This document shows positions 38,018 to 41,674 of a DNA stretch of 64,000 bases, in pieces (position 1 is the stretch's first letter; every line of letters starts with the position of its first letter). The stretch is from Magallana gigas (lineage: Eukaryota): contig NC_088855.1 of assembly GCF_963853765.1 (NCBI RefSeq), forward strand, positions 35,712,001-35,776,000, read 5' to 3'. Both the position numbers and the translations under genes were made by a program. Below the pieces are notes generated by a model. The model was not told the origin of the DNA. It saw only the letters and a list, made by a program, of their open reading frames with translations, and did no database searches.

Positions 38018-39281
38018 GTGAAATTCTGATCGTGTAGCCTATAAAACTCGGTCATAAACACATGTAAGATTTGACTCATTTCCTTATTTTGCAGCTTTAT
38101 TGTTTTCATTAGTTGATTAAACCTTCAACTTTGCACACTTTCAATCCGTAGTTTCTGCATTCGTATCTTCAGGCTAGGCAATAGCACATCTGACATGATA
38201 TAAATTGACAAGTCTTCAAGTTTGTCGAATTTGAAATTTAAAAAAAAAGCCAATTTTCGCCTGCATGATAGGCTTTTTTCCTATATTGCCGACAATGCAA
38301 CATGAAACATTTTTAAAAATAATTTATACACATTTTAATTTTCCGACAGTTAATCTTATCTTTTGAATTTTTATTTATTTATTTTAAAGGGGGTGTCGCT
38401 TCTTGTGTCTCATATTAATCAAAATCTCAAAACCAATGTCTTTAAATAGTTTGTTTTTCTTATCGATAACTTTGCAACTCTGCTATTAAATTGACCAGCT
38501 GGCCGACCCCGTGTAATTTTTCGCAGGGGTGGGTTGGTGGGTTCTTGTCCTATCTTTGTGGTAGCGATAAGATTTTCTTAATTCAGCCGAGCTTTGTTCT
38601 TTAAAAATTTGTTGTATGTACTCTGATAAAATGTGTGTATATCTATATACATGTATATTCAAACAAAGTCATTATACATGTATGTCATGTTTTTTTTTCC
38701 AGTTCTAAGAAGATACGGTATCTGAAGCCTATCAAATTCTTCACTCGCATGTTTTATTCCATCTCTTGATAAAATGTACACCAATCTCATAATCTATTTT
38801 TTCGAAAAATAGTACTCCCTAAGAAATGTTGTTATCCAGAGATCGTATGAATATAGGCCTACCTAATTTTTTTTTTATTTATTCCGTCCCTATTCCGGCG
38901 ATTACTGCATGCCTTTACCTGCAGCGAGCCTTTTTCTAACGGTGACGTCACTGTTTCCATAAATGGTCATGTCAAAATTATACTTGTAGACTTTACATTT
39001 GTAACATGTCAGCCGTGATATTTCAGAAAACGGAAATACCAATGCAGAGACTACGGATAGAAAGTGTGTATTATAGTGGCAGGTTACATGTAAATAACAA
39101 ACATCATTTTACAGCTGCAATTAAGCATCTGTAGGAAAAATTAGATTGAGGGACTGCGAGGTCAACTCTAAAGTGTTTATCACTGAGTTTTATCGATGAA
39201 AATTACACTCACACATACTCAGGCTCACACGCCAAGACGATCGCATATTCGGATTGTCTGGATTTTTGAACACGATTACCC

Positions 39282-40641
39282 CACAGGTGCTTGTGGACTG
39301 GACCGTGCACTACCCCCCCCCCCCTTTTTCTATATTTTTTTTTTCATTTTTTTTTTTATTTCTTTTATTAATTATCATTAACAACCCCTTATATATGTCT
39401 CCAGCCGAAAAATAAAAGAAATATCACGACTTGGTAGCATTTTATAATCAAACTCGTTTCCCCTATATATATAAAGAGAGAAGGTAAGCAACTCCCGTTT
39501 GTTTACATTGAGGTACCACCTGGGAAATTCAAACGATTACTATATCAAAAATCGCTATACCTTTGGTGTCATCTATTTTTCTCACTTCCACACATATCCT
39601 TCTATCTGAAAACTTATATAAATTAGCACGCTGAACCGTAATCTATCCAATTAATAAACATTTGTCACTCGCGACCACGATATTTTGAAACGCTACGGAA
39701 ATTAGCTGCACAGCGACATCTATGCTAAGAACGATAACTCTTCCCGTGTTCCGAATGTCATTGACTTAACGGTAACGCACGAGAGGCCCGAAAAAAAGTT
39801 CGGGAAAAGTTTTAGCGCAATATTTAAGAAAATGGATGTAGATCAATTGTTTACCTTTCAAGCAGTAATTAATGGCCATAACTTGGTCATCACTGGCCAA
39901 GCTGGGACAGGCAAAACATACATAACAAAAAAATTGCAAAACACATTAGGTATACTAAAAAAAAAAGAAGTATCAATAGTTTGCTCTACAGGCATTGCAG
40001 CAACACATTACCAGGATTTGAAAGCCCAGACACTTCATAGGTTGGCTGGCATAGAAGACGGCAGATATTCAAATGCTGAAATTTTGCATTTAATCTAAAA
40101 CTTTTCCCGAACTTTTTTTCGGGCCTCTCGTGCGTTACCGTTAAGTCAATGACATTCGGAACACGGGAAGAGTTATCGTTCTTAGCATAGATGTCGCTGT
40201 GCAGCTAACTTCCGTAGCTTCTACTTGGAACGTTTCAAAATATCGTGGTCGCGAGTGACAAATGTTTATTAATTGGATAGATTACGGTTCAGCGTGCTAA
40301 TTTATATAAGTTTTCAGATAGAAGGATATGTGTGGAAGTGAGAAAAATAGATGACACCAAAGGTATAGCGATTTTTGATATAGTAATCGTTTGAATTTCC
40401 CAGGTGGTACCTCAATGTAAACAAACGGGAGTTGCTTACCTTCTCTCTTTATATATATAGGGGAAACGAGTGTGATTATAAAATGCTACCAAGTCGTGAT
40501 ATTTCTTTTATTTTTCGGCTGGAGACATATATAAGGGGTTGTTAATGATAATTAATAAAAGAAATAAAAAAAAAATTTTGAAAAAAAAAATATAGAAAAG
40601 GGGGGGGGGGTAGTGCACGGTCCAGTCCACAAGCACCTGTG
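39282..40641. mobile_element. Fold-back DNA transposon: 534/547-bp TIRs starting CACAGGTGC, 8-bp TSD GATTACCC
   Basis: Left arm 39282-39815 is the reverse complement of right arm 40095-40641, apart from one 13-bp indel and a few substitutions. GATTACCC lies at both 39274-39281 and 40642-40649. Confidence 0.92.
39832..40098 (+). pseudogene. 5' fragment (88 aa) of a PIF1-family SF1B DNA helicase inside the fold-back element
   Basis: VITGQAGTGKT (Walker A), VCSTGIAA (motif Ia) and TLHRLAG (motif Ib) are in PIF1 order and spacing. The ORF is cut at the right TIR, which supplies the TAA. Confidence 0.8.
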
Positions 40642-41674
40642 GATTACCCTCCATATATGCTTGCGATTTAAGGTCGACAACTCGATCAGTAAATATTGAA
40701 TAACGTACTATATTCCTATTGTCAAACCATAGACAGAAATTTTTTTCTTTAAAAAAATTGCTTATTAAAAACTGATATATGAAAAGTTACAGGAAGAGAT
40801 AATTATCTTATTACAGCCTCTAATCATGCTATATGGATAAATATTTCAACCATGACATTTTCAAAAAATTTAAGGACTTTGTGTCCTGCGATCTAAAGTC
40901 TTAAAAATTTTTTCTAAAGTATTTTTTAAAAATCTACACAAATAGCTTTACCAAAATTCAAAACAAAATTCTGGGGTCTATACTGTCATTTGGCGCTACA
41001 GTGTGTTTAATATGACCTTTCTGCACTGAAAGTGCAGATTGCACATAAATCGCTTTGACCTCTATGATTTATTATCGGAATGAACCATGGCATTAAATAA
41101 AAATTAATACTATCTAAAAGTAATAAAATTAAAATTATCATAAAGAAAAATGTTACAATTCCTTCACCTTTTTGATATTTTGACCTTTTTGCACTGATAA
41201 AACGCTATTTTTATGCATTACCAATTCAGCATGTAATGAAATTATCTAAAAGTCTCAAAACTTGTCAGAAAAATCTTAAAATTTCAGAAAATAAAACAAA
41301 AAGTATGGGTCTATGATATAAAATTTGAGATATGACATGAAATACGCTAATTTTAGGCAAAAATTGTGATTCATTTTTCCTTGACTTTTATATATGCAGT
41401 ATAAGTTAAATTTGCCAATATGTGTCGATAGATCAATATTGAAAAATTGTAAAATTATGTTTTGTGTAACAAAATGAAGATATCCTAATGCACAAACTAT
41501 CTGGAAATTTTGTTTGCACGTAAAGTAAGGAAGCTAAAGTGACGGTACTCAAAAACAACTGAGTTATAAAAAATGTTCATTTAATTTCTTCTTAAAAACC
41601 ATCCGCCACAAAATATAGTCCCATACTAAACTCTGTAAATATGTCATTTTTCCTTTACTATTTTATTTAAGATT

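Follow-up and report, generated by a model that had tools for sequence, protein, structure and literature searches.

A fold-back element of Magallana gigas is very probably an internally deleted copy of a P-superfamily transposon that encodes a PIF1 helicase

The stretch of DNA analysed here, referred to as the window, comprises 64,000 nucleotides of the oyster Magallana gigas (contig NC_088855.1, positions 35,712,001 to 35,776,000 of the forward strand), and it contains at window positions 39282-40641 a fold-back element of 1,360 bp that is flanked by an exact 8-bp duplication. We hold with high confidence that this element derives by internal deletion from a cut-and-paste transposon of the P superfamily and is non-autonomous. 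Its parent measures ~6.95 kb, has terminal inverted repeats (TIRs) of ~560 bp that begin with CACAGG, and carries a PIF1 helicase gene and a transposase gene. What is new here is the single origin of the non-autonomous offspring, the CACAGG termini shared with a mussel, the synteny of the two genes across phyla, a helicase tree with three clades, and a set of RNA observations. A search of the literature, which did not extend to Repbase, found no publication describing a PIF1 gene on an element of the P superfamily.

The left TIR (534 bp, 39282-39815, plus strand), which starts with the 23-nt terminus CACAGGTGCTTGTGGACTGGACC, and the right TIR (547 bp, 40095-40641, minus strand) enclose a spacer of 279 bp (39816-40094, plus strand), and two identical copies of the target-site duplication (TSD), GATTACCC, are located at 39274-39281 and 40642-40649. 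The arms pair in two blocks, 412 nt that are 98% and 124 nt that are 99% complementary, with one 13-bp indel between the blocks, and an inverted repeat of 98-99% over 534 bp cannot have arisen by chance. The arms, the spacer and the exact duplication had been described in the original prediction, which was made from the letters of the window alone, and all were confirmed in the window sequence. The indel that it reported is also present, and can now be described more precisely as a deletion near 39693 that is private to the left arm of the window copy, since the 13 bp are kept in 23 other arms. Within the spacer, a 16-nt leader is followed by the first ~88 codons of a PIF1 gene. The resulting open reading frame (ORF) of 88 aa extends from its ATG at 39832 to 40098 on the plus strand, with a stop codon supplied by the right arm, and of the PIF1 motifs ascribed to it a pattern search found Walker A (GQAGTGKT) and motif Ia (TGIAA). 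The ORF scored 36.8 bits against the Pfam PIF1 profile (PF05970), for which the gathering cut-off is 25.9.

The parental form is represented by two long copies, L031 and L032, both on one other chromosome, which measure 6,949 and 6,917 bp, share 97.8% of their sequence, have TIRs of 557 bp, and are flanked by TSDs of their own (GTGTATAG and TACCAAAG). The left arm and the spacer of the window element are collinear with the left end of these copies. The spacer is the sole unique parental sequence that was kept, and its right edge is a deletion junction common to all short copies; the deletion removed the sequence from PIF1 codon ~88 through a point 8 bp inside the extended similarity of the right TIR, with 1 bp of microhomology. 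The long copies contain two convergent genes between their TIRs. The gene that starts from the left TIR matches the Pfam families PIF1 and Pif1_2B (PF21530) and continues into a tail of ~500 aa and a C-terminal PHD finger, and the gene on the opposite strand, which starts from the right TIR, matches TNP-like_RNaseH_N (PF21787) with 52.8 bits against a cut-off of 24.6. It had been proposed that the element in the window is young and arose by internal deletion within a family of TIR transposons that have a separate PIF1 gene, and this is borne out by 6.9-kb copies that have the same TIRs, a PIF1 gene and a DDE transposase. The start codons of both genes lie 17-60 bp inward of the inner ends of the TIRs, and therefore the 5' leaders of both genes must come from the TIRs, as probably do their promoters.

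When one arm was compared with the genome from which the window comes, 45 TIR matches were obtained, and perfect 8-bp TSDs, each of different sequence, were found in 13 of the 15 copies that could be bounded. Ten aligned short copies are 1,349-1,391 bp long, have pairwise identities of 96.4-99.1%, and share one identical internal junction. A genome-wide search with a query spanning this junction found at least 14 copies with the identical junction, so that the further copies and TSDs that the original prediction implied do exist, and the 14 loci are distributed over 8 chromosomes and have differing flanks. Because the junction is identical across copies, the short form must have arisen once and spread to other sites afterwards. 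Assemblers are known to fail on long, near-perfect palindromes, and the palindrome could have been such an artefact or a local inversion-duplication. However, the same junction is present on different chromosomes in 14 loci with their own flanks and TSDs, and also in contigs of independent public runs. This alternative, which the original prediction had listed among the outcomes that would refute it, is therefore itself refuted, and we give it virtually no credence. The short copies are similar to miniature inverted-repeat transposable elements (MITEs), having the termini of a coding element but no transposase, and being present in several copies that have individual TSDs. In 4 of the 10 aligned short copies, a frameshift within an A-run interrupts the 88-aa ORF, which is therefore a relic that is not under selection.

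The short form could have been generated in more than one way. A strand switch during repair or replication might have copied the left end of the parent, consisting of the TIR and the 279 bp, back on itself, in which case the right arm of the short copies would be a copy of the parental left arm. The left and right parental arms can be told apart cleanly in both long copies at one site only (GTTTT(A/G)G, at the inner end), and there the left-type A is found in both arms of every short copy, and odd derivatives consisting of one full arm and 59-263 bp of inverted arm do occur, as would be expected from such a process. On the other hand, this is a single diagnostic site, and L031 and L032 are close sisters in which the G may be a shared derived state. 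A plain deletion suits the junction, 8 bp inside the extended TIR similarity and with its 1-bp microhomology, equally well. We therefore regard a fold-back origin as a possibility to be taken seriously, although a somewhat doubtful one. Two of the derivatives were of unusual structure. One of 605 bp (L014 1501-2105; G000:C5:28181877-28182481) consists of one full arm and ~60 bp of inverted terminus and is flanked by a perfect TSD (GCATGTAC), which suggests that the outermost ~60 bp of that terminus are enough in cis. The other (L010 1501-3325; G000:C8:40672985-40674809) is a short-form copy of 1,825 bp with an extra partial arm and a perfect TSD, and is a rearranged or nested derivative. As for the insertion site of the window element itself, the sequence directly upstream (39000-39127) is a high-copy repeat, for which the summed contig depth was in the thousands, compared with ~19 for the right flank (DNA run), and the element thus adjoins or sits within another repeat. 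In DNA run X11, the match of a right-flank contig ended exactly at 40642 and was followed by 11 unmatched letters, as an allele lacking the insertion might show, although so few letters do not suffice for a call.

The length of the TSD had left hAT, P, MULE and Zisupton as candidate superfamilies, and among these the sequence evidence identifies P. The long copy and 6 related transposases all scored above the gathering cut-off of PF21787. When a profile of six related transposases was compared with all solved structures, the sole match was the Drosophila P transposase (6P5A/6PE2, E=7.6e-9). The match to 6P5A consists of three collinear stretches in which Drosophila D303, the second catalytic D, and E531 align to a conserved D and a conserved E. 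The first catalytic D was assigned solely via an invariant DEMSI motif, and in L031 the catalytic E is located in a separate ORF beyond a frameshift. The 8-bp TSD also fits the P superfamily. Several results speak against this assignment or against the proposed parent and must be set beside the evidence in their favor. A THAP domain, which is typical of the family although the superfamily is not defined by it, was not detected in the transposase with Pfam (E<=0.01). The GTP-binding insert PF21788 was seen in one related oyster transposase only, where it stayed below the cut-off (22.0 bits compared with 24.8), and a search of the solved structures with a single transposase sequence gave no match. 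In addition, the PIF1 gene is damaged in both long copies by a frameshift in the same A-run together with a stop or more frameshifts, the transposase of L031 is interrupted by one frameshift when compared with the continuous ORF of Mytilus, that of L032 is riddled with stops, and the assembly shows no intact autonomous source for the window family. The broken genes were searched as separate natural ORFs, with all frames left unrepaired, no exons joined and no consensus made. For several relatives, PF21788 does appear in the precomputed domain annotation, and four invariant cysteines in the N-terminal third of the transposase suggest the presence of a different or diverged zinc finger.

The pairing of the two genes was also found outside the window family. 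At many other loci in the oyster genome, transposase-like and helicase-like matches with 25-45% identity to the window family are located side by side. Ten of these loci were mapped, and by protein identity and gene layout they represent several diverged families: at some the two genes are convergent, and at others a helicase intron contains the transposase gene, which is oriented in the opposite direction. Two loci (L041 2364-9256 and L046 3039-8831) have a P-type transposase between the first PIF1 exon or exons and the remaining PIF1 gene, on the opposite strand. One related oyster element is 8.8 kb long, with TIRs of 298 bp, termini that begin with CACAGGCACTTG (CACAGG), and an 8-bp TSD (TGATATAG). 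Full-length relatives of the helicase, including its tail, were found in Mytilus, Tegillarca, Saccostrea, Pinctada, Pecten, Ruditapes, and the hemichordate Ptychodera flava. In Mytilus edulis, the helicase gene is part of an 8.1-kb unit that has TIRs of ~610 bp with 99% identity and, on the opposite strand, a continuous transposase ORF of 726 aa, and of the 23 terminal nt, 20 agree between this unit and the oyster element. At L033 15494-19255, the Mytilus element adjoins a second, partial copy of its family, and its flanks form no TSD, which suggests nesting or recombination between copies. In Ptychodera, a convergent TNP-like gene is located 100 bp past the helicase. Two further contigs contain the same pair, and in one of them, 7,066 bp in length, the frames are open over 1,056 and 798 aa. 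Protein identity across oysters, mussels and the acorn worm is 25-60%. The strict terminal motif CACAGGNNCTTG was absent at ten other loci, indicating that the termini are conserved only among the closer families. Related transposases were also found in Littorina and Dreissena. Two transposases of this clade (P0280 and P0283) are filed as 'MAG: Sedimenticola sp.' and probably derive from bivalve host contigs that were mis-binned into the genome of a symbiont.

Taken as sequences, these loci make the PIF1 helicase a standing part of this P-type lineage, and a lineage that combines the two genes is possibly bilaterian-wide. They also bear on the origin of the PIF1 piece in the window, which might instead have been a fragment of a host or Helitron gene captured once by an unrelated TIR element, as in the transduplication by Pack-MULEs. 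Such a capture could account for the presence of only 88 codons in the window, and oyster genomes contain many Helentron helicases from which a fragment could be taken. However, the full-length copies contain the whole gene, it is found together with a P transposase again in diverged families of the oyster, in a mussel, in a hemichordate and in the two further contigs with long open frames, and the helicases form a clade of their own in the tree described below. A one-off capture is refuted by these three observations as far as the data go, and we consider it very improbable.

The full helicase, judged from the intact relatives, is a protein of ~1,000-1,100 aa in which a conserved tail, predicted to be all-helical, is accompanied by a basic linker and by a PHD finger at the C-terminus. 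PF05970 is above its cut-off for the ORF of the long copy as well as for the 88-aa ORF, and PF21530 (2B) also matches. A pattern search found the Pif1-family motifs Walker A, motif Ia and Walker B, and a signature of the form FGG-Q...GD-QL-P, which we take to be the Pif1 signature motif. It had been predicted that the helicase is not fused behind a Rep domain. In agreement with this, the helicase domain begins at residue 1-2 in proteins of the transposon clade, and Helitron_like_N was not found on the long element with Pfam. The tail of ~500 aa is kept from oyster to Ptychodera, and structure prediction suggests with moderate confidence (pLDDT, the predicted local distance difference test, of 68.8) that it is entirely helical. 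A Foldseek search with this protein matched no solved fold in the helical tail, the PHD finger alone being matched, and a look-up of the tail in the Atlas also gave no match. The PHD finger is similar to the H3K4me-reading fingers of Pygo, TAF3 and AL1 and to MLL3 PHD6, with target TM-scores of ~0.54-0.79, and the structure of MLL3 PHD6 that was matched had been solved bound to histone H4.

A maximum likelihood tree was constructed from 49 helicase domains and 441 columns, leaving out five fragmentary gene models. All 23 full-length relatives fall into one clade (ultrafast bootstrap 100, Shimodaira-Hasegawa-like approximate likelihood ratio test 94), and five of these were verified to be linked to a P transposase. 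Five oyster Helentron RepHel helicases, in which Pfam finds Helitron_like_N, PIF1 and an endonuclease, form a long-branched clade of their own (100/100), so that the helicases of the element do not nest within it, as nesting there would have spoken for a Helitron source. A third clade (100/100) consists of eleven cellular metazoan PIF1 proteins, which include the orthologues of mussel, Saccostrea oyster and Ptychodera. The branching order among the three clades is without resolution. On the evidence of this tree, the helicase of the element is neither Helitron-derived nor a cellular PIF1. Helentron-type RepHel ORFs of 2,183-2,892 aa, with an OTU protease, Helitron_like_N, PIF1 and an AP-type endonuclease, were themselves observed at L048-L052 (for example L050 303-8063) and are present at many loci genome-wide.

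Public runs from 12 studies contain the stretch, and two contig sets from RNA libraries and one run of poly(A) raw reads (X21) were mapped on 39000-40900. It had been proposed that the TIRs contain a promoter, leader exon and intron that are used inward. The positions of the start codons of both genes fit inward transcription, and the letters of the proposed donor (AAG/GTAAGC, 39481-39489) and of the TTTTAG at 39810-39815 are both there, but a splice from 39483 to 39816 was found in none of the reads or contigs of the three RNA runs, and 13 poly(A) read pairs cross 39816 unbroken. The leader intron at 39483-39816 is therefore rejected on the present data. The shape of the coverage is unfit to place the starts or ends of transcripts, since the arms are redundant and the private 13-bp deletion repels reads from other copies. 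The poly(A) reads bear variants of one short-copy subgroup. Some of them pass from the tip of a TIR into foreign flank, so that the signal stems at least partly from transcription entering from outside, which weakens the case for promoters in the TIRs. A contig from one RNA library extends from the inner TIR through the PIF1 start to beyond the deletion point, with two synonymous differences from the long copy where the two were compared by eye.

In the raw reads of X21, 18 T>C changes were found, with no more than 4 of any other kind. They are clustered at 39747-39773 and 40113-40136, in parts of the inner arms that pair with each other. At the 8 left-arm sites, a genomic C was present in 0 of 60 arm alignments at 7 sites and in 1 of 60 at the eighth (39766), and for the four right-arm sites the pairing partners in the arm alignments show the unchanged base in 60 of 60. 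Read on the minus strand, T>C is A>G, which is the mark of editing of double-stranded RNA by ADAR. A transcript through the element is predicted to fold into a stem of ~535 bp (-1009 kcal/mol). The clustered changes thus suggest adenosine-to-inosine hyper-editing of a minus-strand hairpin RNA, a suggestion that is weakened by the assumed strandedness of the library and by the lack of DNA from the same animal. The long hairpin RNA that had been predicted from the arms has gained indirect support from these clusters. ADAR editing has been reported in oysters, and in animals generally it is reported to act on repeats (PMC6651903, PMC9989829).

These RNA observations also raise the question of whether the short element has been kept for a function, with a hairpin RNA that feeds small-RNA silencing of the family or an 88-aa P-loop peptide that acts as a repressor, comparable to the KP repressors of P elements. 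The element is transcribed in poly(A) RNA, the T>C clusters suggest double-stranded RNA, and the hairpin would be very stable, all of which would be expected in that case. However, the frameshifts in 4 of the 10 copies, the differences of 1-3.6% among copies with no sign of constraint, and the fact that mobilisation in trans explains the copy number without any function make this explanation unlikely.

A mechanism can be proposed for the deleted P-superfamily element. The transposase would bind the conserved termini, excise the element and insert it with an 8-bp stagger. In P elements, the gap left by excision is refilled from the sister chromatid, and the synthesis often stops early, resulting in internal deletions; such aborted gap repair is the classic source of internally deleted P elements. 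The short form may have arisen from aborted repair of an excision gap, as a simple deletion, or from a strand switch, and the position of the junction and its 1-bp microhomology fit the former. The deleted product was then mobilised in trans to at least 14 sites. The TIRs would carry the promoters of both genes, and transcripts of short copies may fold into the ~535-bp hairpin and then be edited by ADAR. For the helicase, it has been reported that, when flies lack POL32, their PIF1 promotes long-tract synthesis in the gap-repair assay with P{w^a} (bioRxiv 10.1101/554550). By analogy, a PIF1 protein of its own could raise the share of complete recopying of an element of 7-9 kb, and the PHD finger could tie the helicase to chromatin. 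Alternatively, the helicase might unwind the hairpins of long TIRs or clear proteins from the ends. As a tentative synthesis, for which the likelihood is rather low, the lineage would be an old one of P elements, present in molluscs and a hemichordate, in which the PIF1-PHD protein is the working partner of the transposase and recopies the element from the sister chromatid by D-loop-migrating long-tract repair, with the short copies being failed products of this repair and also a brake through their hairpin RNA.

Cut-and-paste transposons are usually seen as one-gene elements that leave any gain in copy number to repair by the host. If the synthesis above were true, full recopying driven by a helicase would turn cut-and-paste into a net gain. 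A P-type lineage has kept a PIF1-family helicase of its own, with a putative chromatin-reading finger, through deep divergence, and the role of fly PIF1 after P excision in the absence of POL32 makes it testable how such elements secure their own recopying. For annotation, it matters that this transposon clade is the source of many bivalve proteins that bear the names 'PIF1' or 'RRM3-like', and that these are neither cellular PIF1 nor Helitrons.

When compared with known systems, the oyster element is similar to the Drosophila P element (THAP9 in vertebrates) in its P-type RNase H-like core, its 8-bp TSD and its internally deleted copies that are mobilised in trans. In contrast to the P element, which has TIRs of 31 bp, it has TIRs of ~560 bp, no detected THAP domain, a second conserved gene for the PIF1-PHD protein, and a transposase of remote similarity (E=7.6e-9). 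Galileo, which has a TSD of 7 bp, 1360 and BuT5 resemble it in combining a P-type transposase and very long TIRs with short derivatives of the fold-back type, but no helicase gene has been reported for them and their terminal sequences are unrelated to those of the oyster element. In the literature these three are placed in the P superfamily, with TIRs of great length and partners resembling MITEs (PMC3573991, PMC3698922). As for helicases of the Pif1 family, a survey names Helitrons as the transposons that carry them (PMC8788227). The RepHel proteins of Helitrons and Helentrons do provide another case of a Pif1-family helicase on a mobile element, but there the helicase is fused behind Rep/HUH and the element is without TIRs or TSDs, whereas the oyster element has both and encodes a stand-alone helicase from a separate clade. 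The likeness to MuDR, a two-gene TIR transposon with convergent genes driven from long TIRs, and to the RAG-like elements (ProtoRAG), which are also convergent two-gene TIR transposons, is one of layout only; RAG2 also has a PHD finger. The convergent genes of the RAG-like elements are RAG1L and RAG2L (PMC7204232). In both of these systems the transposases belong to superfamilies unrelated to that of the oyster element, and the accessory proteins are not helicases.

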